A stretch of 63,971 nt of DNA, counting the filler, from Lenisia limosa (Eukaryota; Protista; Breviatea), in the NCBI GenBank assembly GCA_001655205.1. It is 7 parts of 7 records of this genome, joined end to end, with 100 filler letters (N's around TTAATTAATTAA, not from the genome) between each part and the next. Parts side by side here need not be neighbours in the genome. Positions count along the whole stretch, not along the records: positions 1 to 29,273 come from LPNZ01009984.1; 6 more parts are not named here. One strand, written 5' to 3'. Under the pieces are notes generated by a model, which ran no database searches, had not been told where the DNA came from, and was given only the letters and a program-made list of their open reading frames with translations. The translations under genes and the position numbers were made by a program. Numbering within the stretch: the stretch's first letter is position 1; every line of letters starts with the position of its first letter. Below, in pieces: positions 57 through 29,317 of this stretch.

Positions 57-3000
57 ATTCATCACCCCACGCGCAACATCCGCGGCAGACGTTCTATGAA
101 CGACCGTCACACCAAGACCATTCGCCACCCCTACGGCCACACCAGGGAAATGTACAGCAGACTTCATCGCAACGCTCTGACTGCCCCCGAACTCGTGGGA
201 GGGGGAAGAAAAAAAACAAAAAACAATGATAACCTGTCAATTATTGCAGTTGTGATGATACTCAAATTGAACCCTTTCACTCACCTCCTTCACCGCCACA
301 AAGCATACATATTACACTTCTCCAGCCTGACGTTGAGGGTGTCCTTGCCTATGATGTCCCTGAGTCCACTCACCCCATGGTGTCCGCTATTGGAAGCTCC
401 TACAGCGCACAGGTATGGGATACTTTCTTTGTTATTATCCAACAAAGACTGAATTCTCGATAAATCCTTGATAAATATCGATATTTTTCACGCCATTTGG
501 AACCGAAAGTGAAGCTCTAGTAGTAGTAATTATTAATATTGTGTAATTTATACTAATGTGGTTAAGTCGATTCCTTAAATAAAGGGGGGCGATATTTGTA
601 CCCAGTCAACTGTAACCCCGCAGGCTATCTGTGTGTGGACCACCATTGACAGCCGTAAAGTCTTGCCCCGTGCCATTGCTTCCTACTACTCCATTCTGTT
701 GCCAGGATTCGAGTGGTCTGACCCCGTCACTATCTTGGAGACTGATGACGTCATCTCCAATCCCATCACTGGTATGGATGGTGTTTATGATATAGTAGTA
801 TGTTTGTATTGCTTTGAGGGGTGCTTTAATTAGTGCGATATTTTCTGGCCTATTCTTGACTCCCTCCCAGGTAAAATCCCCGAGTCCTACGTTGGTAGTG
901 CTATCCTAGGCTTCATGAGATTCCCCCACGAGGATCTCACCCTCAGGAACATGCCCGACCGGTGGGGGGTGGGGGGTCTTCTTTTTCCTTGAAATGAAAA
1001 CCAGATTTTCTTTGGCAACTCTGAACCCATTTTACTCCTTACATGTACATAACGATATCCAGCATGCACACCGCCAACTTCTGGTACCGCACCATTGATG
1101 GTGACACGGGTGAACTCGGCGAACCCACCCAGCTTACGAGCAACAGATACCTGGTGTACAAGCACACCTTCTCAAATGCCGGTGACAGAGTGAGGGTGGC
1201 TTCTGTTTGTGATTGGGTGAAGATTATCAAACTGTGTTATCACTTATTTTTACTGACTCTTCCAGCTCGACCTTGTGTACCTGGTGGACTACGACAAATC
1301 AATTGTCACCTTCCAGCAACGAGCACTCGTCCACCGCTACTGGGTGAGCCTTCCCGTGGTCACTCCATTTGCTTCTTTATTTTGTTCCGTATTCTGTCTG
1401 ACCCCATTCCAGATCCATGACAACAGCACCTGGTCCGAAGAACACTATCTCTACAAGGGCCGCTTCACTAACGACGATATTTCCGTGAGTTGACATGAAC
1501 TTTCAGTTTGTCCATTATACAGCGTGACTATTATTATAACATTTTCTGCTAAGTGTTGAGCTATTTAGTCTTATGGCAGGGTTGTTCCTTTAATTTACAT
1601 TTTCCCTCTCAGGTTACCACGCATAATGGCTACACTGTCATCACATACATTACCAACGATAATGCTGACACCGGCAACGTCGCAATGGTCATCATGGTCA
1701 ATATCCACACCAAGGAGGTGAGGGAAGGGGGGGGGGGGGNNNNNNNNNNNNNNNNNNNNNNNNNNNNNNNNNNNNNNNNNNNNNNNNNNNNNNNNNNNNN
1801 NNNNNNNNNNNNNNNNNNNNNNNNNNNNNNNNNNNNNNNNNNNNNNNNNNNNNNNNNNNNNGATGGTCGTCCATGGCCCTCTGCCTCCGCACCCCAGGTT
1901 TGTTATCTCGCATTTTATGAATTGTGGCGTTATGAAACAGTGCAGTTTTTGTTGGTTCCATTGTTGGTTCCATCACCCCTTCCTCCACAGTTCGAATACG
2001 AGATCGTACTGGACGGTGTGGCGCAGCGTACCCCTTCAGTTGCCCATAACGATAACGGCAAATTCATCATTGGATGGGTCGATCATGCTGAGCAGTACAG
2101 GTTTGCTTGAAGCTTTTCTTTGTTTGCACCATTTTTTTTTTTTTTTTTCTAGAGAGTGGTTTCTTGGTNNNNNNNNNNCTGCCCCTAGATGGAGGTGGTT
2201 CAGTCCCTCTGAGCCCGATAACGCCTATGTTAATCTCTTGGACATGGATGGCAAACCTGCTAACACGAGAATAACTCGTCTTGACGACTCTATTGTGCTT
2301 GTAGTCCAGGTATGACTGGGGGCTATTGTTTGGTTGTAATACATATCATATGTTTTTTCCCCCCCGTCATTATTTGGTTTCTTCCATCCAGTAACCACTT
2401 AGGCTATGGTTCTCAACTACGTCAACGAAGACCCTGAGAAGGAATACCGCAAGAACAGCAACATGCCTGATACAAAGGCTATCTATGGTAAGTAAGAATG
2501 CTGATTTGCAAAGTGTTGGCTCTTTGTTTTCCTCCTCTTTTCTATTCATAATAATATTATTGTCAGGTGAGGTACTTGAACAGATGGAGCACTACGACCA
2601 AGTAGCTACCTACGTTCTTGTTGACGGTGACATTGAGTTCCAAGTGGGAAGGGGGTCCCTTGATATGATAAAACAGAATAGCCTCTTCCTTCTCGAATCT
2701 CTTAATTGTGTTTACCTTACTCTATTCAGGTACCCCGCCTCTACTCTCGTCCCGGCATGTCCCAGGGCAACGCTGACTCCATTGAAGAGACCAGTCTTGG
2801 TTTGAGGATACATGCCGGTGCACTTTATCACTGTTTTTGAACGCCACTTACCTTTATTTGGCTGTTGCACAGTAACATCATGCAAAAAAAGAGAGCATCT
2901 CAAGCACCTTTTTTCTCACATCCACAGAAATCACATACAACCCAGCTGGTGGAGGACTTCTCTTCACCTCTGTCCAAACACAGGTGAGCTATGGATTAGT

Positions 3001-6000
3001 TATAGCTTGGCGTCCAACCATCTCTCGTTATATTCCAATATCTCTTTTAAGCGTGATGGTGTGGAAGGCTTCGGCGGCCAGATACAACCTTATTTGTTTA
3101 TTTCTCAAACCGTTATCACTACAATAAATACCTCCACCGTGACCTTCCCAGGTCAACTACGCCACCAGTGTCCGTGCGGACTCTACCATCAACTACGCCC
3201 AATCTTGCCTGGTTGCTGATCTGGCTGTCTCTATCCCCGAGTACGATGAAGTGACTGGCATCGTCAACGTCACTGTAGGGGGGGGGTCTGTTTTTTGTTG
3301 CTTGGTTTTTTTTTAAAAAAAAAATCCCCCGCATGGGATTCTTTAGTGTGGCTAGAAGTTGAGCTAACAACCCCCTCAGGTCACCAACATTGGCAGCTAC
3401 CAGACCTTCTCATCCGGTGATGTTAAAGTCTTCTACGGCAACTTCCTTGGCGCTGTAAACCACATTCTTGGCAGTTGCCATGTACCGGTTCTTCTCGCTG
3501 GAGAGAGCATTACCTGCATCGTATGAAGGGAACCAACAATTCTTGAGTGCTTTCTTTTTATTGGAACTTTTAAAGATTATTCCAATCTTGCATTACCCCT
3601 CCGCAGACTGACTACATGGAACCCACCGACCTCGAAAGCTACGGTTACCTTTGGGCCTATGCTGATATGGACGATATTGTCGCAGAGTGTGAGGAAACTA
3701 TCAACAACATGGCCTTCGCTATCCCAGCTGATTTCGTGATCAAGAACTCCTCTCTTTCTTCAGGTTGGCTGTGAATATATTCGCATTTGTGTCTTTCATT
3801 GTTGATTTTATTAACTTAATTCGCACTCAACTAAATACTAAAATACAATACCAAACAAGGCTGACTTACTCCAGGTGACGATGATGGCGATCCGGAGTTT
3901 GCCATTGGAGCCATTGTGGAAGTTGTCGGTCCTTTCCGCCAACATCCTATGGATACTTCGCTGGAGATTGTTGCTGTTGTCTATACCCGCGGTGGCAAAC
4001 GTCACATTGTTGAGCGCATGCCTATCAATCTGAGTGACGGTGAAGTCGAAGTGTCTCTGATGATTGACCCCAAGGACCTCATCTTCCCCCACGTGATGCT
4101 TGCAGTCATCGGTAACCACATTAGCCTTGATGAAGCGCTTCTTGAAAACGGACCGAACCTTATGGTGTCCATTCCGTTGCTTCCTGATATCAAGATTATC
4201 GAAGGTACAGTTGATAACAGTTACTGGCTTGATAGCGCTACCGTCATCTACGTTGATGTCCAAAACACGGGTGTAACGGCTGCCGTGTTCTCCGGTGAAG
4301 TATTTGCTACTGAGAACCCCCACTCCTTCGACATGGGACAGCAGATTGAATCGGACTTCATCTATATTCCTGGTCTCAGTACGCGTACCTTCTCCCTTCG
4401 CATCGAAGTGGTTAACAGTGACCCCACGTTCCCATTGACGTTTGTCTTCAACAGAGAGGAGGTCGTGAAGGAAGGCGGCTACGACGACAACACTCTGTCA
4501 TTCCTGGCTGAGCGCTACCCTACCGCCCTTCCTGAAGTTGACTTCTCCACAATCGCTTATGTTGAGCCCTCGACTGCTGCGGGGGCCAACTTCGACTCGC
4601 AGGTCACGTTCGACGTTACCAACAACGGCGAGGTTGATATTCTTGCTGGCAGATGGGAGGCTCGCCTCTATTCCGGCCAACCCGGCTCATCATCTACCTT
4701 GCTCCTTGCTCGTCAAGATCTTCCTGAGATCCTTCAGGATGAGACCGAAACAATTCGCCTAGACATTATTCAAGGCGAAGTTCTCGACTATTGTCGCCGT
4801 CTTCCTATTTACCTTGCTATGGTTCCCCTGGAATTTGATAACGAACCGCTCGAGGACGTTGCTGAGTTCATTCTGATGCAGCTCAAACTCCAGGAAGCCA
4901 AGACCGGTATGATCACCGTCATGCCTGAGGCTGATTTACTTGGTTCTGAGAAGTGTGGTGATTCTGGTAGGCAGGATTTGTGTTAAGTCTGAATACTTGG
5001 TAGCTTTATTTTTATACAGATAATTGACCTATTTTCCTTGGGGAAATATGAAATCGGTTAAGGCTTATCACAATGTATTCCATTTCTTCACCCATCACCT
5101 TTTAGAAATCAACTTGCCACCAACTATGGAACCCCGTGTCCGTTACCTTGTCGATGAGGATGGCGAGGTTGTCATTACACCCGAGGTTGAGGACGTCGAT
5201 TCTCCTAAGGTACGCTTTCAACTTTCATCCACCATCTTTCTGACTATAAGTTACTAATTCCTTTAGGAGGCGATTACCTGTCACGTAGTTTCTATCACTG
5301 CCGCTGCCATTGGCCAGGTTTGTATATTCGGATCCTGAATTGGGAATGTAACAATGGAAACAAGAATGAGATTAGACTCTTACCTTTGGAAGGACTTGAT
5401 CTTACGATTCAGGTCTTCGATGCCCCTGTCAATGGAACAGAAACTGCCATTATGGCTGTGGACCTTCCCTTTGCCCTCACTGAGTGCCGTGTCATCTATC
5501 GCCCTGACCACGTTGGTGCTGGAGATACTAAGTTTCTAATAAATATTGTAAAGGCTAATGATATTGCTTTGAGTGCCATAAACCTCTTTTTCTTCTTATT
5601 TAAATTCATAACTTGTCAGGACATGCACCACAGACGTATTGACGTCTACCAAGATCGTGACATAATCGAGTTCGTAGCCGACGACAGGTTGGTCTTAGAA
5701 TGACAAGATATTTATATTTCCACTCACGTTAGCTCAATTACTCACCACCCTCCAGCGTGAGCTCTTCAGTTGAGTCTGGTTTAGCCGAGGTTATCATCTC
5801 TGCTGAGTACGATGACATCTACCTGAACTGCAATGACACCGTTTTCGAAGGTTAGATCGCTTACGTTGTTGTCGTGATGTGCTTGAATTTCTTTAACATG
5901 CACCAGTTACCGAAGATATTGATGAGCGTTTGGACTGTGTTTTCGTTGACCCTGACGGCATGGATGAGGAGGCTACCGACTACTCCTACACACTCACTGT

Positions 6001-9000
6001 CAAGTCAAGACATGGTACCGTCTGGGACTTCTCTGGTAAGAGGAGTGGATCAAATTTTAAGAAATCAATGAAGGATTCACTTTTAGGGCTTGGTGATAAG
6101 GGTTTTATTTTTGTAGCCCTTCCTGGTGTTGTCGGTGTTGCTCTTCCTCGTATTCCTTTCACATTCCCTAAATGGGAGGGAAATCATGATACTAACAACA
6201 ACGCTGCCAATTTCTACAACAACGGATGGACTGTGGGGGGGGGGGGTTNNNNNNNNNNNNNNNNNNNNNNNNNNNNNNNNNNNNNNNNNNNNNNNNNNNN
6301 NNNNNNNNNNNNNNNNNNNNNNNNNNNNNNNNNNNNNNNNNNNNNNNNCATTATCAACAAAAGCTACAGTGATAAACATTATCAACAAAGAGGTTTAGAG
6401 CATCTCATTTACACCCTTTTTCTGACCATCAAGATGCTCTCCTACCTCAAATTCGAGCAATTCCTTGAGTACGTTACATACCGCCCTGACCCCAACTACA
6501 ACAATGAATATGCTAAGGAACAGCTTGACGTCTGCATTACTCGCACCAACGGCAAGGTCAAATCTAAGCAATGCTCCTCATCGTGGGGGGGGGGGGTTCT
6601 CGATAAAACCTCGATAAANNNNNNNNNNNNNNNNNNNNNNNNNNNNNNNNNNNNNNNNNNNNNNNNNNNNNNNNNNNNNNNNNNNNNNNNNNNNNNNNNN
6701 NNNNNNNNNNNNNNNNNNNNNNNNNNNNNNNNNNNNNNNNNNNNNNNNNNNNNNNNNNNNNNNNNNNNNNNNNNNNNNNNNNNNNNNNNNNNNNNNNNNN
6801 NAATGATAAGCCCGTTATCAGCGCCTCGCTTCCTTATAGATACACCCCTGAAGATAAGTGGATCATCTTGGACGATCTGAAGGTTTGCTTCCTTGTATCA
6901 ATTGTATATTTTCTTTCACAACAATACCACCATGTTCTGACACCCTCCCAGGTCATTGACCTAGATATTGCTGAGCAAAATACGGACATGCGTTTCGAAG
7001 TCACCGCCAAGCATGGTATTTTCGACCTCAACGACGCTTCCCTCGGCTGCGGTGTAGAAATCACCGACTGGGGTATGTACGACAACCGTACCGACTTCCC
7101 TGGCCATCACATCTTTGAATATGACTGGTCACACACCGCCTACCATGCTAAGAGTTACAAGAGTATCGGGCTACATACCTTCGGATTCGTTGGATCCTAC
7201 GAAGGCTGCCAGTGTGCCATTGCTAACCTTCGTTACATGTCAGATATTCACTACACTTCCTTCTATGACGGCCCCGATCAAATTGTGCTGACTGCCTTTG
7301 ATTTCGGCGGCTCAGGCATTGGCGGTGAGCAGAGTGGAACGCTCACTCTTGAAATCGAGGTTACCCCTGTTAACGACAACTTAACGCTCTGGGTCCCTCC
7401 TGTGTGGCACACCATCGAAGACACCTACCGTCGTATTCCTCTAATTGATCTTGAGGACCCCGATTGTGACGAGACCTACTTCCTTGGGGACTACTACACC
7501 GCTACCTTCGCCACGAACATTGGCTTCTTAACTCTTCCCGCTGAGTGGGCCAATAAGACTGAGAGTATTTCCGGTTCCCGCGAACCTACTCTTGTATTTA
7601 CTGCTGACTTCTTCACCATGGTCAACGCATTGAGAAACGTAAGTGCTCTGTTCAAAGTGAACCTTCTTTTTATTACCCCCCCCCCTCTTTTTTTTTACTA
7701 ATTTCCCAGGTCCGCTACCAGCCCTACGAAGACTACGCGAGTAATACCCACGAAGAACAGGTCCAGATCCAAGTCAACGTTACCGATAACGGAGGACACG
7801 GCCACGGCTTCCCCTTCTGGGCGTCCAAGAACATCACTGTCATTGTCCACGAGGCCAACGACGCTGCCGAGATATACGGCCCCGTCAACGTCACCGCTCC
7901 TCTCAATGACGTAGCTTATTTCGATATGGACATGTACGATATTGATCTTAATGAAACTACCATTTATTCCATGACTGCTACTGCACTTCATGGTCACATT
8001 CTGCCTTCTCTCGCCACCCCTGAGGGCGTAGTGAAACGTCTTGGTCATGCCATCCGCATGTCCGGAACTTTCAACGAAACTCGTGACATCTTCATGAAGG
8101 GTATGCGATACCAGGCCGACCCAGGATACTGCAACCAAGGTGAACTCACACAACCTGAGGAGATCATCACTGTTACTGTGAATGATGGACGAACTGATCG
8201 ATTCAATGGCCCTCTTGCCGGACGCTATCAATTCCCTGTTTCAGTTCCTTGTAATTACAAGAACCCGCGTGTCCTTGTTCGTGACTTCCACATCTCTGAG
8301 GGCGGTACTTCCGTCGTTCGTGTTGCCGCATTTGACCCTCTCTTTGCCTACCTCACCGTTAAATTTGAATCAACTAACGGTACCTTCGTTCCTGCTGAAG
8401 GCTTCGACAGCGCGAGCATGGTCATTACCGGCGGCCCTGCGAATATGGTTGAGCTCCGTGTCAGAACACTCTCAATGAAAACTCCGCAACCCCTGGTAGT
8501 CTTTACACCTGATGCCGGAACCAATCATCTTGATGACACGTCTAGTATCCTCGTCACCGTCTCCAATGATGCGAATCTGACAGTCTCCCGCGAGGTCGCT
8601 CTCACCATTGCTGAGGTTGATGATGCTATGCTTCTGACCCCGACTGAGACTGCCTCTTTCCCTGAAGATGAATACCTCCCCGTTCTCTCCCTGTTCGACC
8701 TGTCCAACTACGATGACAAGCCGAATCAGGTCATGAATGAGCGTCTGTTTATCGAAATGTTCCTTTCCGAAGGTTTTTTCAAGATCACTTCCCCTCTGCC
8801 CTACGTCACCTTTGACCCAATTTCGTCTCTGATTAGAGTCGAAGGAACAATGGCTGAAATCCAGGCAGCTTTCACCGAGCTCTCTGTCAAGCAAATTATG
8901 GGTTACCACGGAGAATTCACCATTTCAGCCCGTGCCGGACGCATGGATTATGAAGCAGAGAAAACGGTTGCCCGCACCGTGGTTATCGACTCCATTGTTG

Positions 9001-18000: not shown

Positions 18001-21000
18001 GAAGGAACGTCTACTCGGCCGTATGCTGGGAGCCTTGCATTATATATAAGGATGGGAACAATGGCTAAGGTAGTATAATAAACTGTCTCTTCTCAGTTAC
18101 AACCCTATATTCAAGCCAATTTGAGGGTTATATGTTCCTTATCATTGATGTTTCATTTTATCATTGATGATTAGGGCTTCACTTTGGTTCGAAAAAAGAC
18201 GGAATTTTTCGATAAATCCTCGAAAATTATCGATTTTCCCCTGGTTTTTTTCGAACCGAAGTGAACCCTATTAATGGATGATATTTCATTTTATATTGAT
18301 TTTCATATCACCTCCAAGGTCACTGGAACGCTCATCTACCGCAACGTTCTCTTCCAAGAGGCTGTGGTAATATGCTACGCTTCTGCACCCGAATGTGGCC
18401 TCCTTGCTTCCGACCCCTATATCGCCACCGTCCGTGTCGAGAACATCGACTTCAAGGACAGCCGTCTTGTGTCTCATGGCAGCACCGTGGACCGCTTCAT
18501 GGGCGGTCTTGTCGGATACTCCAAGACCATCACCTTCCAGTCTGAGAACTCCCTAGTTGACGCGGTCTTCAAGAACTGCCAGATCTTCTTTGGCTTCTCC
18601 CTTGACCTTGCCATTCCGTGCAAGGAGCCGACGGTTATGGACGCGGATATCGACTCTGAAATCTGCATCTTCGGTTGTGACTTCAATTTGGTGTCAACCT
18701 TCGAGCCTCTTTATCAATGCCCTGGTATGTACGTGTTTCTTTTCATACATTATTTATTTTATTTTTTGCTCTGAAATTATTGTCAATATTATTACTTTTC
18801 CGGAACACAACCACCATTTTAAATTTCGAGTTTACCCCTCCAACAGGTTTGGAGTGTGTGGACCCCGAAACCGTGACCATTGCCAACAACGGTAATCTCA
18901 CCTGCGAAAACCACCCTCTGACCTTCACTCCGTCCTGCACCACGTCTTGCGAGGCCGAATGGGACCAGGTTCTTGACGGCGGCCTGATCACGTGCAACCC
19001 TTCCACTGCCTGGCCTGAACTGGCTTGTGAGGAGTTCTTCTGTGACGACCCTCTTCTCGCCAGATATCAGGTACGGAGCTTTCGTATCTTTGATTGATAT
19101 TTACTGTGGACATGTACTCATCTATTATACACTGTTTTATTCAAAAAAAACTGTTCATCAACGTGAAGCCTTGGCCAAACTCACCCCCACAGACCGAAGA
19201 TCGCGTGAAGTCTTGCGTCTGCGCCATGGGTGTTACCATGACTGACGGCAACTGCACTGCTTGCCCAGTCAACTTCTACAAGTCAGAAATTGGCCCTGCC
19301 CCATGCTCGGAGTGTATCCCTCTCCGCCGCACCCGTGAGGAAATGTCGACCTCCATTGACGACTGTGTGTGTATCATCGGTTACGGTGAGAACCCGGTTA
19401 CGTTCGAATGTGAGGAGCTTGTCATCACGCCGACCGGCATGGCTACTTTCATGGTGAGAGTGGGGGGAGGGTACTACTACCTGTTCAATATGAACATATT
19501 GGATTTGTTTCTTTTTTCTTTTTTGGAATCATTCCAGTCTTTGATCATCCCCCAGGCTGCCTCACCCACCTCAATGGCAGTATCATGGGACCAGTATCTG
19601 GTGCAACCCCTTGGATTCCCATTGACTTACGTCATTCAGCTCAACAGCACTGTGGGGGGGTTATTGATTTCAGACCTTTTCTTTATTTTTTGCAAAAAAA
19701 CACTGACCCTCTTAGCTTGGCATGACTGTTCAAAAGATCTCTGGAACCTCGCATAAGGTCTTTGAAGAAGTCTTCGGTCTTCTGCCCGGAATGGACTATA
19801 ACGTAACATTCACGGCCACGGCTGAAGTTGCCTCGGATAACATTGCAACGTCACCCTCTATCACGGGCACAATCTCGACGCCGCTTCCGAGTCTCCCATC
19901 GTTCTCCACTTACTCGGTGCGTGATTGATACCAGCTTAATAATATGTAATATTGAATATGATTGGAGTAGAGAGCTGAATCATTCTCTTTGACCATATTA
20001 TAATTCTTCCACTTACGCTGGAGTGATGGGATGCGGTGCTGCAGAAGCGACTGCCCTNNNNNNNNNNNNNNNNNNNNNNNNNNNNNNNNNNNNNNNNNNN
20101 NNNNNNNNNNNNNNNNNNNNNNNNNNNNNNNNNNNNNNNNNNNNNNNNNNNNNNNNNNNNNNNNNNNNNNNNNNNNNNNNNNNNNNNNNNNNNNNNNNNN
20201 NNNNNNNNNNNNNNNNNNNNNNNNNNNNNNNNNNNNNNACTGGACTTGTCGAAGTCGTGTGGCCTACCAACACGCTCATCTTCTCGTGGCTCAGCATCAA
20301 CGCCCATGTCTCTGTCAACAATGTGACGTACCTCATTCCCACGACCGAAACATCCGTTGAAATTCCTGACCTGATGGCTCAGAATGTCTATGGTGTCTTC
20401 ATTCAGCTTTGTGCCGGACCCGACCCTGCCGACTGTGAAAACTCCGTGGTCACTGAAACCGTCCTCACAATGCTCCCCGAAGTTCCGCTTCAACCCGCGA
20501 ACCTCGTTGTAGGAGACTACGTGATTGACGAGTCGTTGCTCTACTTCCAAACTGAAGTGTCTTGGGACGCTGTGGACGGTGCTACTGCTTACAAGGTGTT
20601 CTACCGCAACATGGTTGTGGACATCATCAACAACGCCATGAACGTCACCACCATCGGTGTTAGCGACACTATTCCGTTCGCTGTCGCCGCTGTCAACCCT
20701 GCTGGCACCTCAGTACTTTCCGAGGGCGTTACACTCGCTATTACTAACCCGTATGTGGACTTTTTTTTATTCGTCGTGTCCGCTTTTTAACCCGGTAAAC
20801 ATAGTACATTTGTCTACCACCATGTATCATAAAATCGTCGTGAACATTACACACAGCATGACCTTTTTTTTTTTTCTTTTTTTTNNNNNNNNNNNNNNNN
20901 NNNNNNNNNNNNNNNNNNNNNNNNNNNNNNNNNCATCTTACAACATAGACCCCCTGTGGTCACTGACTTTGTTGCTCTCGACTCCGCCAACCTGGACACT

Positions 21001-24000
21001 GTCATGGCTGCTGGCGATCAGGTATGTGAGGACTTCCGCTATTCCGTTTCTTCTGTGCCACTGTGGCCATTCTCAAAATCAACATAACATGTATCTAGAG
21101 GACTACTATTGGGTATTGATTTTTAAAAAAAAAATTATTACTCCCTTCATATGAAAATGGAACACAGAACCTTACTCAGCCCTAGATGATCATCACCTTC
21201 GACCAAGCAATCAATGCCCAAACCTTCGACCTCACATGCAACATCATTGAATGCCCTGGTGCCGAGCCATTTGAATATGTCATAGACTACTCCTCGACAA
21301 TCATCGACATGACTAGCCTGGGACTGTCTGAAGATAGTGAAGGCCTTCCTAACCCGCTACTCGAAGGACCCTTCGTTAACCAATTGATCCTGACGTTCAC
21401 TTACGTTACGGATGACGCAACCGATCATATTGAGCTTTATTCCGTATGTGCTTTGAACTACACATGTGGAATCAAGTCATATGATAACCTATCCCTGCCT
21501 TCAGCGTCCTTGACACCCGCCCTTGCTGGCAACTGGGGAACCCCTGTCACCGAAGCTAACATCACTATTAGCAAACCAATTACAATTGAAGAGGACGGTC
21601 CAGCTGTGTACCTCTCCATGATTGACATTGAGTACGACATTGACACTTTCACTCCCCCCGCAGTTTCTCTTTACTTTGAATTTGGTGATGGTGTTGAAGT
21701 CCAGATTTCCGGTGAAGATACTGACCCCGAATGGACTGCTCAGATGAACTTCGACTCGATCACCGCTTACATGGCCACTCTGTCCGTTGCAAGCGCTCAA
21801 GACTTCTCTGGAATGTCGTTCATCTCTGTGACGGTAACTGATACGCAAGACACTCTCATTGCTAAGCTCCTTGAGCCTATTACCGTGGAGTTCACGCGCG
21901 ATCTCCCCACTTTCACCTATAACAATGGTGTTACCCTCACTCCTGCTGGCGGAAAAATTTTCCATGGAGCCGAAATCACTGATCCTGATGAGTATGAAAT
22001 CTCTTCAGCGTCCGCAATTTCATCATCGCCCCTTTCGGTCTCAGTCACCACTGCTGACGAGTGCGGTTGCACCGTCACCAAGATTCCGTCCGGATTCCGC
22101 TTTGTCGGTACGCCATCAACAGTAGCGTGTGGCCTCAGCTTCCTGGCTGTGGTACCGAGCAATGACGCTCTTCTGAGAGGATTCGTTCGTGTCAGTGTTG
22201 TCATCTATGATCGCTACACCTTGATGCCTCCTCTCAGCCTGGATGTGGCTATCCCAGTGTCCTGTGACCCCGCTGTTGCCCCCGTCTTAGTCAATGCAAC
22301 CATGACCGACACGTTGGACCTTCTTCTTACATTCGATAAGGTCGTCCACGCACCCAAGACCATGATCGGTGTCCAAGCTCTTCTTGGCGACTCACAGGAG
22401 AAGTTCGGCTTCACTGCTGTTGTGTCACGCGTGTCTGCCGTGTCTTTCAGGGTTGAGAAGGTTAGTTGAGGCTGTGAATTTGACTGTTTTGACTTCTTTT
22501 CTTTTTTTCTTTTTTTTTTTNNNNNNNNNNNNNNNNNNNNNNNNNNNNNNNNNNNNNNNNNNNNNNNNNNNNNNNNNNNNNNNNNNNNNNNNNNNNNNNN
22601 NNNNNNNNNNNNNNNNNNNNNNNNNNNNGACCGCCGTTCCGGGCGACGTTGTTCAGGTTGCAGCCAAATTCCGGGCCTGTTCGTCACTGACCTCCGCCGC
22701 CGCAGTCTCCAGCGCCGTCGTTATTGGCCCGGTCAACCCTCCCAACCTCAGCTTCTCTGTAGGCGGCGCTATTGCAAAGATGGGTCTTTTTTGGCATTGT
22801 ATGGGATGGAGGAGGGGAGGGGGGGATTACTTGATGGATTTTGATATATCTTGTAGTTGCCCCATGTCTCAACGCTTTCCTCACCCCTCCAGGTCTCCGG
22901 TCCCCAGGTCATCGCCATCTGCAGCGGAGGCAAGGAGAACGTCTACTTCCGCATTGAGTCGTACAGAGGCTTCGGTGGTCGTGCGCCAACTTTTATGTGG
23001 TCCATTAAGGTTCGTAGGCATTCTGATATACCAGGAAGTTGATGGTGCTGTTTTACTGATCAATGTTGATGATTTTGAGGGATAACTATCGATTAACACC
23101 AATAGTTTCTCCTCTCATCCTCTAGGGTGAAGTTGGCAACCTCCTTGACGGAGTTGACACTAACCGTGATTACCTTCGCGTCGTGCGTGAGCGTCTCATG
23201 CTTGCCGATGACACCTTTGAAATCTCCGTCATTGCCACGTCATTCCTGGGGGTCTACAAGTCCTGGACCGAAACCATCAATGTCGAGAAGGGAGTTGTCG
23301 CCATGCCTCTTATTGCCGGCCCGGTCTACCGTCAGGTTACGGGACGCACCACGCGCATTATTGCCGAGGTGGCGCCTGCGCCATGTGGTATTAACGAGGG
23401 CGTTGTCGACTACTTTTGGACTTCTACTGGCACTGACGTCTTCAAGGGCACCACAAACACTAAGCAAACGTGAGAGGGATCGGTTTGTTTTGTTTTGTTT
23501 TGTTTATTTTTTGTGATAGTGTGTGTGTATGTGTGATGTTCACATTTCTCAACTGGCTCCTCCTTTTCTCACCGTTCAGTGCCGTCATTGATGTCACCAA
23601 GCTTGAGTACGGTGTGGTCACCGAATTTGTTGTCCAAACTACCCTGTCATTCACCTCCAAGACTGCCCAGGCTAAGGTGGGAACCATGGGCGGAGAGGAA
23701 AATATCTTCGAGTTAAGTTCTTATCATCTCTTATTAGTTCACTTCTTTGAACATTATCGTTTTCTTCGCTACTCACTCCGCAGGTCCTACTTGAGCGAGT
23801 CCTGCCACCCCCAGTGATCCGCATCAACGGCGGCGCCGCACGCATTGTCAGCAACAAGCAGACCGTTGACTTTGCTGCCACTCCCACTGGACTGAACTAC
23901 ACGTGGTCCTGCACCACCGTCGACGGCGAGACTTGTCTCGGCATCAACGGACCCATCGACCTCGCCGGCTACACCCCGTCTATCTCTGCAGGAGAATTGC

Positions 24001-27000
24001 CCGTTGGATTCTTCGAAATTTCAGTTCGCGGTGTGGACATGCGTTCCGGTCTTGCGGACTACTTCACCCAGACCCTCGAGGTCAACGAGCGTGAATTTGC
24101 CATCTCTTGTGCGCCAACCGCTGAGGTGTTCGCCCTTAGTGAGCCTGCTAAGATCTCCATCGTTGCAGCGGCTGGTGAAATCCGCAATGTAACATGGGAG
24201 ATTGAAGACATTCCGTCCAGCCAACTCCTGGTTACCTCCGCTGGTGTGATCCTGCCGCTGCCCTTGGAACGCGGCATTATTGACGCCACCGTCACCGCCA
24301 TGGGTATGAACAACGAGACCGTTTCATGCACCACTTCCGTCCTTATTGAAAGCCCTGTTGCTGGCGGCGGACTTAAAATTGAGCCCTCATCTGGTGTTGA
24401 GTTCACCACGGAGTTCATGATCACTGCGCCGAGTTGGGAGGCTGCCGACGGCTACGAGTCGACTTACAAGCTGTTTTACGTCGACGCCAATGGCGTTGAG
24501 CGCCCCTTGACTGAGGAGTCCTCGGCAACTGAGTTTAACATTTACCTTCCTGCCGGTGTCGATACCGACGCTGACGTTCTTGAGATCATCCTCGAGGTCA
24601 TTTCTCGGTCCAAGCACTCCGTCCGAACCACCGCTACCGTCACGGTCACCCCTCTGTCTGACGACGACCGTGCTGTTGCCATATCCGCCATCATGGACGC
24701 TGCCGCTATGACTGGCTCCCTTGACTTAATTATCCCTACTCTGTCCGCTCGGAAAACTGAAGGACGTCGTCGTGCTGCCACCGAACTCGCTGCCTCGGCC
24801 ACTCTTCTCAGTGCCTCAGAGGACTTCCCGTCCACCACGCTTGCGTCGTCTGTTCTGGCTCTCGCGTCAGACCCTCTTGCTCTCGATGCTGCTACTATTG
24901 ACAATCTCCTCGCTACCCTCACTAACGTTGCGGTTGCTGGCAAGAACGGTGAAATTGAGACCATCAACGACGGCCGTATCTCAACCTGCCTGTCTGCCCT
25001 GTCGCAACTCGCAATGAATCCCATTGTAACAGCTTCTGATATTCGCCCCGTAGTTGCCCCAATCAGTGAGGAGCTGGCGGGTCTTCAGGACACCGTGGAC
25101 CGCGAGGACAACTCCGGCGGTTCCATTCAACTCACAACCGTGTCCGATCCTGCCTTCACCTACGGCTTCAACGTGACCATTTCCGGCGTCCAAGTTGACA
25201 TTTCCGATGCTGACGTGTTCACCATCCAGACTTCCGAGCCACAGGCCTTTGCCTACGTCAGTGACGTCATGATTACATCGGCCTTCTCTGTCTACCCCAC
25301 GTCTAACACCTCCATGGTGACCCTCTCCGTGTATGCTGCCGCTGTCGACGCTTCGGCGTTGAATTGTGGCGCCAGCGTGTGTGTCCCTCAATGGCACGTC
25401 CTAAGCGAGGCCAACTGGACCTCTGTCGGCCCTCAGTTCAGGAGCCGTTACGACCCAATGGACACCGTAATGACTATCGACATTTCGGCCAATACCACCG
25501 CCGTCTATGCAGTCCTGTCCGTCCCCATCTTCATTGAACCGTCTTGCGGAAATGCCATTGTTGAAGCTGGTGAAGACTGTGATCCGCTAGTCGCCACCCC
25601 CGGCTGTACCAACTGCTCTCTCACTGTTGGATGGACATGTTCCGGAGATCCGTCTGTCTGTCTCGAGAAGGCTGACACGTCACCTTGTGTCTCCGCTGAG
25701 TCCGGCTGCGCCACCTGCACCAAGTCCAACCCCAACATGTGCGCGTCATGCACCGATGCCACGCTTACACCAATCGGCGCCTCCTGCCGATCGGTGGCCA
25801 GAGAGGCCCTGCCGGTCACAGCCATGCAGGATAACACTTTCTACTTCGCCGACGGTGTGACTGTCGACCTGCCCAGTGCCCTTGCCAAGGCTGCGAACCC
25901 ATCCTTCAGCTACATGCCTTTGTCTCCTGCCCATGACGGAGATGCGTCCTTCACCACGCTCAACGCAACCTTCAGCGGCGTGACCTTTGACCTCACTCTT
26001 GAGGGCGTTTCCGGCCAGCTTGATTTCCCCATCGTTGTCTATGTCAACGTTTCTGAAATTGCCTTAACCGGCTTCGACGTTCTGCTTGCCACCAACAATA
26101 CGTGGATTGCGCCATACATAACTTGCGACGCCTACGTGGCGCCCAAGGTCATCAGCGGCGAGCTCATCTTCCAGACCTGCCATCTCTCCCAATTCACGAT
26201 TGTCGAAGGTATGGTAGCCGAAGAGTTCTGCGAGATCCCGCCGGTGTACGCAAACGGCACGACCAACTGCGACGGTTTGGACAACATCTCCATTGGCCAA
26301 AAGTGCAATGTCACCTGCGGCGCCGACCTCCTTCCCTACACCTTCGAAGTCACGTGCAACAGCTCGCTGCAGTGGCCGTCAGCGATCTGTTATCCCGACC
26401 CGGACAAGATCGAGTACCTTGTACCGGTGTGTGACCCCGTCCCGACCAACTTCACAGACCACATCAATGGTTGTGCGTCAATGGATCCCGATGACGTCAC
26501 GCCCGACGTGGCTTGTAACATTACTTGTGCAGACGGTTATCGTCTCATCGGCATCGAAACCACTATTTCCTGTAACTTCACCACTTACGCCTGGAAAACT
26601 GAGCCGCTTTGCGAGATTATCCCCCCTCAATGCAACGTCATGCCTGTCATTGATGGCGTCTCCACCACATCATGCTCCGGAGGAACTGTCGATGTCGGTA
26701 CTGAGTGCTTCCCGACCTGTCTGTCTGGCTACGTGTCCTTGGAATTGAACTTCACGTGCGATGCTGAATCTGGCGAATGGCCGACAGACCTCTGCCACCG
26801 TACCTGTGAGGCCTTCCCAACTGATGTGGTCTCCAACTGCTCGACCGGCGCTCTCTTCCCCTCTTCTACCTGTGAAATTTCCGCATGTTCCGGTGAAGGT
26901 CTCATTCCCGCCGTGACGTACACCAGCTGTGACCCTGTTTCGGGCTATTTCGCCACCTCCGAGACTCTCTGCAAGGCCAGGGCCGTATGTCAGCCCATGC

Positions 27001-29228
27001 CGGCATGGAGCAACGGTGCTGTCACCTCCTGCGATGGCGCTGACGTGTACCAAGATATGAACTGCACTGTCACGTGCCCCACCACTCGCCGCATTAGATC
27101 ATTGATCGCCTGTGAGTCTGATGGCTCATGGTCGATGCCTGAGGTCTGCGACCAATACGTCAGCTGTGACTCCTTCCCGTCCTACAAATACGGCAACATC
27201 ACCACCAACAAAACTGTAGTCTACGCGGACACTGTCGTCACTGTCACTTGTCCTGCTGGCATGGTAGCTGTTGACCCCACCCCGTCTTGCGACGCTGTCA
27301 CTGGCGAATGGCCAACTCAGATTTGCTTCAACCCCCGTGCCTGTAACACGATTTCCGGCTATGAAACCGCTATCACTCACTGTCTCCCAAGTGATACGCT
27401 CGACATTGAGTCACGTTGTTCGTTCAACTGCTCAGAAGGCCTCAAGAAGACCGTTTCGGTTCTTCAATGTAGTCCTACTGACGGTACCTGGCCAACCACC
27501 CCTTGTGTGCCATACTACAACTGCAGCGCCATGCCCGTCTACAACCACACTACCGCCACCTGTGACCGCGACGGCTACCTTATGGAGGGCCAAAGCTGCT
27601 CATTCACCTGCGAACGTGGCTCCAAAACATCGATCGCATCCTTCACCTGTGTTGACGGCGCTGATTGGCCTGCCACCATCTGCGAAGAGATTCCTCTCTG
27701 TCCCGCAATCCCGTCCTACACTGTTGGATCCTTGACCTGCCTCAATAACACCAACACCGACGACATCTGCAACGTCACGTGCCCCGCAGACCACAGACCC
27801 CTCATGTCACAATCCTCCTGTGCCGCCGGCTGGCCAGCTGACATATGTGAGTTCTACTGCCCTCACCCGACCCCCGAGGTCGGAGCCGTGTACTGTCCGC
27901 CAGGCACCATTTATGAGGGTGACCAATGTGTTGTTCAATGCCCTGAGACGCACTTTGCTCCTCTCCACAAGATCACGTGCACCCAAGGCGCTGATTGGCC
28001 CGAAGCCTGTGTGCTCAAGCCCCAGTGTGAGGCCAACCCCATCTTCCCAAGCGGTTCGCTCAACTGCTCATCCGACCCCGTCATGTACCTTGATTACTGT
28101 GACGTCCTTTGCCCGGACTACTTCGACCACGTTGTTGACGCCTCCATCACGTGCGCGCTCAACGCCACGTGGCCCCAACTTCTATGTGTTGAGCAGCCGC
28201 AATGCAAGGACCTCAACATCACCTCACCCGGCTCACTCGACTGCCCGGCGTGGCCAAGCCATGTTGATGTGCCGTGTGCTGCTGTGTGCCCCAACTCCCA
28301 CGTCCCGGTCTCGCCCAACCCCGCTTGTGATGCCGACGGTAACTGGCCGGACCGCCTTTGCATTGTCGAGACTTGCAACCCCGCTGCCTTCACCGGTATT
28401 GGCCAAGTGGTCTGTTCCGACCCGACCCGAGGTGAGAACTGCACCGCCACCTGCCCATACACGCACACGCCAATTGTGAGTGACTTTACCTGCACTATTG
28501 ACGGAGAATGGCCTGAAATCCTCTGTGAGGCCCTCCCGCTGTGCCCCAACATCACCACCTATCTCTACGGTCGCATTGAGTGTGACATGGAAACACCCGT
28601 CACCACCTCGCAATGCACGCCGGTCTGCCCCACTCCCCTTGAAACTGTCTCTACAAACGTTTCTTGCGGTTCGGAGCTGAAGTGGCCTGACCAAGTCTGT
28701 GTTGAGATGCCTGTTTGCGACTCGATTCCGAAATACACTTACGGCACCGTGACTTGTCCCGACGGTCCCGTCTTCAACAGCTCGGCCTGTGACGTATCGT
28801 GCAAGGGGCCTCTCAACCCCCTGGAAAGCACCGTTGCCTGCGACGCGGCCGGACAATGGCCGTCTGAAATCTGCGATCTCGCGCCCATGTGCAAGACCCC
28901 CTCGTATAACGTCGGAACCCTGTGGTGCCACGATAACATCATTGTCAACACCCTCAACTGCACTGTGACCTGTCCTGAGGGCTATAGCGTCATCGATGAA
29001 AAGGTCACGTGCGACGAGAACGGCAATTGGGCCGAAGACATCTGCTCCGGTCCTCCCGTCACGGGACAAGTTTCCTCTGACGACAGCAACTCCACCACGG
29101 TGGACTCATCAGAAACGGACGGTCGCCCCATTTTCGCCCTCTTCGGCCTTGTGATTATTGTTGGTGGTGTCGTAGCCGCGGCTTACATCGTCACTGGCAA
29201 GGAGAAGGAGGAGAAGTCTCTTGATGAG
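57..29228 (+). CDS. Giant multi-exon single-pass cell-surface protein (adhesin / polycystin-1-like mosaic), 5' end upstream of window, 3' cytoplasmic tail cut by contig end
   Basis: Dozens of GT-AG exons with uniform C-ending codon bias on the + strand. The junctions I checked stay in frame (7638/7710 NALRN|VRYQP; 13479/13580 KSLSF|AGILG; 13733/13793 SSVA|VSNS). Two very large exons: 7710-13479 and 23784-29228. Ends in TM IFALFGLVIIVGGVVAAAYIV + TGKEKEEKSLDE. N-gaps inside introns prevent proof that it is a single gene. Confidence 0.8.
441..517. mobile_element. MITE family A, left-truncated, in intron
   Basis: AAAGACTGAATTCTCGATAAATCCTTGATAAATATCG...GGAACCGAAAGTGAAGCTC|TA. Confidence 0.65.
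3215..3762 (+). other. CARDB-like Ig domain within giant protein
   Basis: Spliced translation ADLAVSIP...VTNIGSYQTFSSGDVKVFYG...VPVLLAGESIT...AYADMDDIVAECEETINN matches the CARDB pattern DLxV...VxNxG...DxxNxIxExxExNN. Confidence 0.7.
4528..4907 (+). other. Second CARDB-like domain
   Basis: LPEVDF...VTFDVTNNGEVDILAGRWEARLYSGQPG...LPEILQDETETIRLDI. Confidence 0.55.
5105..9240 (+). other. Tandem cadherin-like / bacterial-adhesin Ig repeats
   Basis: Recurring linkers IEVTPVNDN, IVHEANDA, IAEVDDA, QVFDAPVN; TIEDT; YQPYEDY...VNVTDNGG; VTVNDG. Confidence 0.6.
9300..9760 (+). other. DNRLRE-like beta-sandwich domain
   Basis: RAWLRVRA...LHLLNGGQQWNET...WIEFDITNALQD...FALLAAN...PPYVHL resembles the SATLRL...WNE...WxEFDIT...PYL pattern. 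Confidence 0.45.
11790..11960 (+). other. Thrombospondin type-3 (Ca-binding) repeats
   Basis: KGYCGCGVPEVDTDGDGVPDCADDCPYDSLKIEAGSRGCGFFDLDSKGSGIYDCND. Confidence 0.8.
12790..18620 (+). other. Four GLUG-type beta-helix domains separated by Cys-rich linkers
   Basis: Each copy starts with a DID/LDC + G-x-G-H-type motif (RDLDC..LNGNGH; TDDIDC..YQGHDY; NLNGQSLTIQNL; YKLSSDIDC..FDGQGHTIKNL). GGLVG motifs near 15557, 16435 and 18502. Confidence 0.6.
18174..18268. mobile_element. MITE family A, near full-length copy, in intron of giant gene
   Basis: TA|GGGCTTCACTTTGGTTCGAAAAAA...TTTTTTCGAACCGAAGTGAACCC|TA. Confidence 0.85.
19213..19410 (+). other. Ephrin-receptor-like (GCC2/GCC3) Cys-rich repeat
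   Basis: CVCAMG...CTACPVNFYKSEIGPAPCSEC...TSIDDCVCIIGY. Confidence 0.75.
19525..20750 (+). other. Fibronectin type III domains (about 3)
   Basis: ASPTSMAVSWD...YVIQ...GLLPGMDYNVTFTA; EVVWP...PDLMAQNVYGVFIQ; VSWDAVDGATAYKVF...FAVAAVNPAGTS. Confidence 0.75.
22630..24660 (+). other. PKD/REJ-like module
   Basis: LNYTWSCTTVDGETC; GGLKIEPSSGVEFTTEFMITAPSWEAADG...TYKLFY...YLPAG, typical of REJ domains. Confidence 0.7.
25541..25665 (+). other. Myxococcus-type cysteine-rich repeat (DUF4215-like), followed by a furin-like CxxC segment
   Basis: CGNAIVEAGEDCD...GCTNCSLTVGWTCSGDPSVC, then CATCTKSNPNMCASC. Confidence 0.75.
26103..26207 (+). other. GPS (GAIN-type autoproteolysis) motif
   Basis: W(26103)IAPYITC...LIFQTCHLSQFTIV; H-L-S at 26181-26189 fits the GPS HL/(S/T)xF consensus. 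Confidence 0.6.
26227..29045 (+). repeat. 16 tandem six-cysteine sushi/CCP-like repeats (about 55-60 aa each)
   Basis: Counted 16 units of C...G...C......C...C......C....WP...C in ORF 23814..29321. Confidence 0.85.
29130..29192 (+). other. Transmembrane helix of giant protein
   Basis: IFALFGLVIIVGGVVAAAYIV, preceded by a Ser/Thr/Asp stalk and followed by a charged tail. Confidence 0.85.
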
Positions 29229-29317
29229 GTAAGAGCGAAATGTTCTGCGCTTCTTTTTTTTTTTTTTTTTTTTNNNNNNNNNNNNNNNNNNNNNNNNNNN
29301 NNNNNNNNNNNNNNNNN

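Follow-up and report, generated by a model that had tools for sequence, protein, structure and literature searches.

The window analysed in this study, i.e. the whole stretch of 63,971 nucleotides (filler included) joined from seven records of the genome assembly GCA_001655205.1 of the breviate Lenisia limosa, begins with a part (positions 1 to 29,273, from LPNZ01009984.1) that probably holds most of one intron-rich eukaryotic gene for a giant type-I cell-surface protein of ~7,600-7,700 residues. From the N- to the C-terminus the predicted protein would comprise a beta-rich region encoded by small exons, CARDB/Ig-like modules, cadherin-like modules of the calcium type, CBM96/DNRLRE-like and Ig-like stretches, a TSP3-like motif, four GLUG-type modules, one sushi module, a GCC2/GCC3 module, three FN3-like modules, a REJ domain, a helical-plus-beta region with a DUF4215 module and the motif CHLSQF, sixteen CCP (sushi) modules, a membrane helix and an acidic tail of ~100 residues. 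An earlier note, made from the sequence alone, had described positions 57 to 29228 as a chimeric adhesin/receptor with a bacterial-style head, a polycystin-like REJ-GPS body and a sushi stalk, and the domain order given there was broadly right. The same architecture was found in none of 1.8 billion representatives or 5.8 billion clustered proteins, save for one paralog from the same sample, so that the note's remark that the architecture was not recognised holds for the collections searched.

Gene model and exon-intron structure

For the prediction of the gene structure a codon log-odds table was trained on the two giant exons of the region alone, and coding segments were linked via GT..AG introns by dynamic programming, first without and then with splice-site matrices derived from the programme's own output. 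All frames were read on two public contigs (L002 and L001, described below) and then mapped back to window coordinates. The dynamic programme always joins compatible exons and cannot call gene ends.

With this splice-aware approach ~55 same-strand exons were chained on the + strand from 624 to 29228 without a stop codon. Two of them are giant stop-free exons of 1,923 codons (7710-13479) and 1,815 codons (23784-29228), located in long + strand open frames at 7608-13520 and 23751-29273, with many shorter frames before and between them. In three regions outside the training of the codon table the chains scored 685, 441 and 787 on the + strand, 214, 87 and 128 on the - strand and ~20 in shuffles, so that the + strand exceeds the opposite strand 3-6 fold and shuffles more than 20-fold. 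The introns (n = 51) have a median length of 99 nucleotides (range 51-298); 49 of the 51 carry a G at donor position +5, often followed by a run of G, and equally many end in a YAG acceptor after a C/T-rich tract. The guanine-plus-cytosine (GC) content amounts to 38% in introns vs ~53% in exons; it is ~53% in the long frames and drops in the spacers. The intron style as such is unusual, as donors often consist of GT and a long G run (GTGGGGGGG), acceptors follow C runs or poly-T and the G at +5 is near-invariant (e.g. L002 16095-16193, 18175-18261 and 8657-8854).

The stop-free chain, the uniform splice signals and the scores far above those of the reverse strand and of shuffles support the earlier claim of same-strand exons over more than 29 kb. 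The product spliced from the exon at 624 onwards has 7,663 residues, in agreement with the former guess of ~7,000 or more. The first frame of that description (57-449) scored near background for coding and is probably not an exon. The predicted features are listed below.

624 to 2983, + strand: N-terminal region, ~13 short exons (56-163 nucleotides), beta-rich (putatively beta-propeller-like according to the earlier note); splice scores good, coding score per codon 0.2-0.7
3152 to 4966, + strand: CARDB-like/Ig-like modules in the exons 3152-3274, 3380-3520, 3607-3763 and 3875-4966
5106 to 7638, + strand: cadherin-like modules with 'V.V..VND.P ... Y.P...Y.G.D' signatures in the spliced translation; model uncertain at ~6087-6582
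7710 to 13479, + strand: giant exon 1, with more cadherin-like, DNRLRE/CBM96-like and Ig/filamin-like stretches, a TSP3-like motif and the start of GLUG module 1
11808 to 11876, + strand: TSP3-like calcium-binding motif, a single motif (Pfam TSP_3, PF02412, E=0.017, 15.2 bits vs a cutoff of 25)
13580 to 18724, + strand: four putative GLUG-type beta-helix modules in ~15 exons, including an exon hidden in the gap 14116-14294
18847 to 19070, + strand: 17th sushi/CCP unit, of the six-cysteine type of the stalk (independent E=7e-7 with a stalk profile that does not include the unit; blastp vs the stalk E=2e-4)
19193 to 19453, + strand: GCC2/GCC3-type cysteine-rich module, Ephrin_rec_like (Pfam PF07699, E=1.8e-10, 40.8 bits vs a cutoff of 23.1; precomputed match on an ENA open reading frame)
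19556 to 20750, + strand: three FN3-like modules, with the contig break 20058-20238 in the intron between the first and the second
20949 to 23676, + strand: pre-REJ region and N-terminal part of REJ in six exons, containing motifs of the F.W type (FMWSIK, YFWTSTG); one alignment across 7 introns shows collinearity with the paralog
23784 to 29228, + strand: giant last exon, with the acceptor CTCACTCCGCAG|GTC at 23783/23784 and the donor GAG|GTAAGA at 29228/29229
23868 to 24671, + strand: REJ domain core (Pfam PF02010, E=6e-18, 65 bits vs a cutoff of 25, model positions 111-420 of 452; REJ proteins also matched by phmmer)
24771 to 26219, + strand: GAIN-like region of ~8 predicted helices followed by beta strands and ending in a GPS-like motif; low-confidence model
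25539 to 25787, + strand: DUF4215/Myxococcus-type cysteine-rich repeat inserted in the GAIN-like region (TIGR02232, E=0.0065, 16.2 bits vs a cutoff of 20.8, full model length)
26178 to 26201, + strand: GPS-like motif C-H-L-S-Q-F-T-I, as read from the sequence, putatively cleaved at HL|S
26226 to 29048, + strand: 16 tandem sushi/CCP modules, 15 with six cysteines (C-x12-C-x10-C-x3-C-x12-C-x10-C) and unit 6 with the classical four
29130 to 29192, + strand: single transmembrane helix IFALFGLVIIVGGVVAAAYIV
29193 to 29228, + strand: K/E-rich start of the cytoplasmic tail

A collinear paralog from the same sample

Exhaustive phmmer searches with residues 1-830 of the last exon against the 1.8 billion representatives returned a single homolog of the region following REJ, namely the protein P0002 (E=1e-37), encoded at locus L004 (NODE_722) of the same sample. 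When the window model was compared with L004 by tblastn, five collinear blocks were obtained. The same gene finder was applied to L004, and residues 2-789 of its product correspond to residues 4429-5199 of the window model (E=3e-64), while residues 823-2578 correspond to residues 6-1744 of the 3' half of the window model (E=1e-74). The two paralog segments abut across the contig break at 20058-20238 with at most ~10 residues unaccounted for. Altogether the paralog is collinear over ~2,500 residues at 22-31% identity, and several introns coincide in position and phase between the window and L004.

The likeness lies in the order of GLUG, sushi, GCC2/GCC3, FN3, a REJ-like domain, the helical region with DUF4215 and CH[LF][ST]QF, a stalk, a helix and an acidic tail with ISDD. 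The paralog differs in that its stalk is made of ~50 copies of an 18-residue 'C.LDTPTHPNYPGC' repeat and not of 16 CCP modules, and in that its REJ core is unrecognised by Pfam; its contig ends inside the GLUG region. Within the paralog stalk (L004 9280-14811, residues ~930-1780 of P0002) the tandem repeats read 'C(T/N)LDTPTHPNYPGCV.', and no Pfam family matches P0002. A scan of metagenome loci with the paralog alignment yielded DUF4215-type matches, with ten loci matching the DUF4215 part alone, and no ortholog.

From the 17th sushi unit to the cytoplasmic tail

The REJ domain and the GCC2/GCC3 module, both named in the earlier note, were recovered by Pfam above the curated cutoffs. Since the Pfam match to REJ starts at model position 111, the domain begins upstream of the last exon. 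When the whole giant exons were searched against Pfam, REJ alone was reported, and searches with pieces added weak matches, apart from Ephrin_rec_like elsewhere in the model. Alignments with REJ proteins of the library stay within the last exon and are therefore without bearing on the splice joins. In the library, REJ is most closely related to that of short proteins from metagenomes, which have partner domains of bacterial type (in one case a sorting tail of the type IX secretion system, in others PKD-like or carbohydrate-binding domains), and for this reason REJ alone is not a polycystin signature.

For the FN3-like region nothing was found in Pfam at E<=5, and the FN3 exon alone had no sequence match in the PDB; a two-sequence profile of window and paralog gave 10 weak PDB matches, all to FN3 proteins (E=0.027-2). 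One of the FN3-like units is split at 19651/19716.

In the alignment of the 16 stalk units the cysteines are invariant or near-invariant, as is W50. CCP modules are beta-sandwiches of ~60 residues in which four Cys are conserved and a Trp comes ahead of the last Cys. The stalk profile matched almost exclusively CCP proteins in the PDB (best E=1.3e-5), and an AlphaFold model computed with the 16 units as alignment reached a pLDDT (predicted local distance difference test) of 91.4. Foldseek searches with this model listed CCP-module structures as the top 50 matches, with template modelling scores of 0.53-0.71, including the six-cysteine short consensus repeats (SCRs) of selectins. The match to Pfam Sushi is marginal (E=0.04). 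The count of 16 sushi modules in the earlier note is exact, with profile, model confidence and structural search in agreement.

The membrane helix is the sole strong hydrophobic segment in the 7,663 residues, which confirms the single C-terminal transmembrane segment proposed before. The tail continues beyond the window part in one to three small exons (L001 ~9038-9389) that are acidic and P/T-rich, and the letters of this part stop in the poly-T of the preceding intron. The tail is ~100 residues long and carries the motif 'VISDD', the paralog tail having 'QISDD'. The ~10 kb downstream have a GC content of 37% and a coding signal at background. In particular, ~9 kb of 36-40% GC (L001 9900-19165) contain no convincing gene on either strand, vs the dense 29-kb gene. 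Over the whole product 93 N-glycosylation sequons were counted vs 57 +/- 7 in shuffles, and cysteine accounts for 2.9% of the residues.

Proteins with a comparable stalk are CR1, the selectins, CD55 and the pappalysins, in which tandem CCP modules likewise form a spacer between a binding head and a single helix; the six-cysteine variant is reminiscent of the selectin SCRs, and pappalysin pairs a similar cysteine-rich module with CCPs. The protein described here differs from these CCP-stalk proteins by a head unrelated to lectin, EGF or complement-regulator heads, by ~4 times the length of CR1 and by the marginal Pfam Sushi match.

Putative adhesin-type modules in the N-terminal two thirds

The modules upstream of the 17th sushi unit are suggested by motifs and by search leads. 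Pfam CARDB (PF07705) matched one unit at E=0.009 (16.7 bits, under the cutoff of 22.7), and one CARDB-like unit was seen by eye to be split over three exons; phmmer and profile searches of the CARDB exon gave no sequence match in the PDB. Giant exon 1 has no Pfam family at E<=0.01 and no PDB sequence match, and word-based searches for its homologs returned itself and, for the TSP3 motif, one weak match to a protein from JGI that bears the name 'Bacterial Ig domain/Thrombospondin type 3 repeat'. For this exon the score of 0.69 to DNRLRE/CBM96/Big_9/cadherin clusters in the Atlas is of lead grade; Pfam and NCBIfam gave no match to DNRLRE/CBM96 or filamin profiles on its pieces.

Three of the four GLUG modules open with a 'D[IL]DC' linker, all four have a 'G.GH.I'-type head (diverged in module 2) and each contains one GGLVG. 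Module 1 is divided between giant exon 1 and the following exons. The exon 16629-17799 obtained Atlas scores of 0.85-0.90 to Glug/Peptidase_M26_N clusters, and Pfam Glug (PF07581) did not match any of the model pieces. The CARDB, TSP3, GLUG, FN3, cadherin-like and DNRLRE-like calls made earlier are backed by motifs, sub-threshold matches or leads, and a curated profile threshold was reached by none; the filamin call found no match in Pfam or NCBIfam on the pieces of giant exon 1.

Giant bacterial and archaeal adhesins (CARDB, Big_9/cadherin-like, CBM96 (DNRLRE), GLUG) resemble this region in the suggested module types, in the beads-on-a-string layout and in the 'VND.P / Y.P..Y.G.D' signatures. 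The present protein differs from them by ~55 spliceosomal introns, by its eukaryotic anchoring, by the absence of any module at a curated threshold and by the absence of a close prokaryotic homolog. A recent bacterial transfer or contamination was considered and rejected, as the ~55 spliceosomal introns and the lack of a close prokaryotic homolog in 5.8 billion proteins speak for old domain shuffling instead.

Assembly gaps and public contigs

In the ENA assembly ERZ3820729 the protein encoded by the last long frame is listed as an open reading frame called in prokaryote style, which led to three contig pieces. L001 (NODE_105) covers window positions 20239-29273 and ~10 kb downstream, and L002/L003 (NODE_464) cover positions 1-20057 and 3,991 nucleotides upstream. 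The ENA contigs agree fully (100%) with the window letters, except for the block across a gap of 10 N, where identity is 99.5%. They fill nine of the ten N gaps; at the remaining one, 20058-20238, the contigs end in both assemblies. Most of the sequence replaced by N runs is intronic and rich in homopolymers, several of the examined gaps containing poly-T, poly-G or poly-C. Besides the gap with the hidden exon (14116-14294), four N runs clip 11-38 nucleotides of exon starts. The stated gap lengths are wrong by up to ~60 nucleotides. The filled gaps are as follows.

1740 to 1861: real length 150 nucleotides, intron and 21 nucleotides of exon
2169 to 2178: real length 20 nucleotides, poly-T acceptor region
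6249 to 6348: real length 46 nucleotides, filled by L002
6619 to 6801: real length 184 nucleotides, intron and 22 nucleotides of exon, filled by L002
14116 to 14294: real length 166 nucleotides, concealing an entire exon of 139 nucleotides
14625 to 14728: real length 39 nucleotides, intron
15143 to 15230, 20885 to 20933 and 22521 to 22628: filled as well

Transcript evidence

The only RNA run of the study, a polyA library with 47 Mb of contigs, was used. Five RNA contigs of 170-215 nucleotides match the region at 99-100% identity and a depth of 2-6, all of them within 25708-29202, i.e. in the 3'-terminal 3.5 kb belonging to the last exon, and their density climbs toward the 3' end. The five contigs contain neither splice joints nor loose ends. 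None of 609 words sampled from giant exon 1 was present in the RNA. The last exon is thus probably transcribed and the library 3'-biased; a 3'-biased cDNA is favoured over even DNA contamination because RNA lies on the last exon and none on giant exon 1. At position 25745 the RNA contig has C vs G in the genome, a single difference at a depth of 2 that may be an allele, a strain difference or an error.

The GPS-like motif and comparison with polycystin-type proteins

The region following REJ ends with '...W-x6-TC-x17-TCHLSQFTIVEG', and the paralog has 'TCHFTQFAIIEG'. The motif is kept in the paralog as CHFTQFAI (CH[LF][ST]QF), within the block of highest conservation, identity in the alignment being otherwise 31%. 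A GPS has been described (PMC9672506) as an HL|T/S tripeptide with a conserved Trp and 2-4 Cys that terminates a GAIN domain, itself made up of eight helices and 13 strands, and lies near the first membrane helix. The HL|S-type tripeptide, the upstream Trp and the two Cys of the window region fit that description. The motif is ~985 residues and 16 CCP modules away from the membrane helix. As a weak lead, the GAIN-like region obtained an Atlas score of 0.72 to mixed GPS/GAIN/ZU5/FIIND clusters. ZU5 and FIIND are other self-cleaving domains.

The DUF4215 module inserted in this region was matched by phmmer with E values down to 1.6e-11 on proteins that Pfam shows as DUF4215 arrays. Pfam reported no PF13948 (DUF4215) match and NCBIfam the sub-threshold Myxococcus repeat alone. 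The Myxococcus repeat proposed in the earlier note is therefore backed by relatives found with phmmer and falls short of the profile threshold (16.2 vs 20.8 bits). The module was also weakly aligned with a segment of human pappalysin-2 (E=0.26), and since the CCP modules of pappalysin match the stalk profile, the pairing of the two module types is found in an animal protease.

The sea-urchin protein REJ1 and PKD1/PKDREJ share with the window protein a REJ domain followed by a helical-plus-beta region that ends in H-L-S with an upstream Trp and two Cys, as well as a huge mosaic adhesive ectodomain. Here, the GPS-like motif is unrecognised by Pfam and separated from the membrane by 16 CCP modules, there is an insertion of a DUF4215 module, PLAT/LH2 and a 5- or 11-pass or channel domain are missing, and similarity outside the REJ core is not detectable. 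Pfam gave no PLAT/LH2 match, and no multi-pass region (5-11 helices) exists beside the one strong hydrophobic segment. A polycystin-1 orthologue was excluded by the lack of PLAT and of a multi-pass region. An adhesion GPCR (G-protein-coupled receptor), i.e. GAIN combined with a seven-helix domain, was also considered, and a single membrane helix was found. The expression 'polycystin-like REJ-GPS body' was consequently overstated, with no PLAT, no multi-pass region and a GPS-like motif far from the membrane, although REJ itself is real. The label 'receptor' is not supported, nor are the earlier readings as a prey-capture or mechanosensing protein of a flagellate. As for the GPS call itself, the conserved CH[LF][ST]QF motif stands, while profile, fold and a membrane-adjacent position were not recovered. 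GAIN-type cleavage at CHLSQF is regarded here as possible.

One gene or several, and other readings

One giant gene for a type-I surface protein, with its 5' end upstream of the window, is the most likely reading. It is favoured because domains straddle introns (GLUG module 1, FN3, REJ and CARDB), because a sushi unit of the unusual six-cysteine subtype of the stalk recurs 4.7 kb upstream of the stalk, because the paralog locus L004 is collinear with several identical intron positions and phases, and because a scan of the first ~6 kb revealed no internal ATG with a signal peptide, nor any convincing start codon. Upstream of the window there are further exons with good splice sites. Further upstream, at ~-3750 to -2220 on the same strand (L003 reverse complement / L002 1-2090), seven high-scoring exons encode a K/E-rich coiled-coil, probably a separate gene.

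A number of points weigh against the interpretation as one complete adhesin gene. The exon joins are predictions and no RNA contig crosses any intron; coding scores are low for several of the exons located before 3152, and intron sequence was probably read through in the exons 6087-6582 and 15386-15712. The scan yielded neither a start codon nor a signal peptide for the giant gene, and the coiled-coil region upstream terminates in an in-frame TGA overlapping with a possible GTGAG donor. Most of the 'adhesin' domain names are sub-threshold or language-model leads, and the function that we regard as most likely, that of a long-reach, membrane-anchored adhesin, is deduced from domain types. With respect to the GPS-like motif, Pfam GPS returned nothing even at E<=10, a profile search with the GAIN-like alignment found no GAIN structure in the PDB, and the AlphaFold model of the GAIN-like region from the two-sequence alignment was unusable (pLDDT 39).

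In another reading, prediction has fused at least two adjacent same-strand genes, e.g. one for a secreted head (CARDB, cadherin-like, GLUG) and one for a membrane protein (sushi, GCC2, FN3, REJ, stalk and helix). The method cannot call gene ends and did chain the probably separate coiled-coil gene onto the model, so over-joining happens, and RNA backs the last exon alone with zero words on giant exon 1. Within the region, however, no in-frame stop precedes any of the proposed donors and in the part scanned an internal start followed by a signal peptide was not seen; GLUG module 1 extends from giant exon 1 into the next exons, the paralog keeps everything from GLUG modules 3-4 to the membrane helix as one collinear unit, and the last exon opens within the REJ domain at the model position given above. 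We therefore judge such a division into several genes unlikely. That no working gene is present, the region being instead a gene in decay or an artefact of assembly or prediction, appears very improbable: ten N gaps, ends of the part at homopolymers and the very low RNA depth of 2-6 would be in keeping with it, but two independent assemblies agree at 100% outside the one block spanning a 10-N gap, polyA RNA contigs match at 99-100%, the paralog is collinear and open at only 22-31% identity, and without selection open exons as long as 1,923 and 1,815 codons cannot be maintained.

A different role is suggested by the robust REJ domain followed by an HL|S-type motif, in the order seen in polycystin-1 and REJ proteins, given that in brown algae and ascidians proteins with REJ and GPS count as candidates for gamete receptors (PMC4700764, PMC9265791). 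The protein could accordingly be a REJ/GAIN-type sensory or gamete-recognition receptor similar to sea-urchin REJ/PKDREJ, in which a ligand of the head would trigger GPS-dependent signalling via a partner channel. This is quite unlikely in our estimation, as there is one helix and no PLAT, channel-like or multi-pass region, the GPS profile gave no match, partner domains of bacterial type accompany REJ in its nearest relatives, and at ~985 residues between motif and membrane a tethered agonist acting on a membrane bundle cannot apply (cf. PMC9672506). It is also conceivable, though rather unlikely, that CH[LF][ST]QF marks a true GAIN-type self-cleaving module outside adhesion GPCRs and polycystin-1, i.e. 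in a single-pass protein of a non-animal protist and on top of a stalk of ~1,000 residues, where it would form a force-sensitive latch releasing a head of ~6,500 residues.

Proposed function and biological meaning

As a long-reach, membrane-anchored adhesin, the protein would use its CCP stalk to hold the distal head, with its binding modules, at a distance from the membrane, and the head would present carbohydrate- or surface-binding and calcium-stabilised modules to a substrate, to a prey or partner cell or to the cell's own coat. The short tail would be suited to anchorage and not to channel or G-protein signalling. If the GPS-like site cleaves itself, the head of ~6,500 residues might, speculatively, stay non-covalently latched to the stalk and be shed under load. 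The stalk is regarded as a spacer, an interpretation favoured by the paralog, which swaps the CCP modules for ~50 short cysteine repeats and keeps the core.

In our reading the protein would be a giant adhesin specific to its lineage, whose new architecture combines known types of module, a common situation in protist surface proteins. For the annotation of the genome it is of importance that the N gaps of the window conceal real exons and that public prokaryote-style gene calls list the gene as dozens of unrelated small open reading frames. If the model is true, the protein would be among the largest single-pass surface proteins described, and it would represent a long-reach adhesin of a protist that arose by shuffling bacterial-adhesin-type modules with REJ and CCP modules usually discussed for animals. 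The swap of the stalk with retention of the core from REJ to the conserved motif suggests that this core is the functional unit and that the stalk serves as a length spacer. A GAIN-like latch far from the membrane would moreover bear on the origin of the cleavage mechanism of adhesion GPCRs and polycystins and, if true, would imply a GAIN latch that predates its use in receptors and is more modular than this context.

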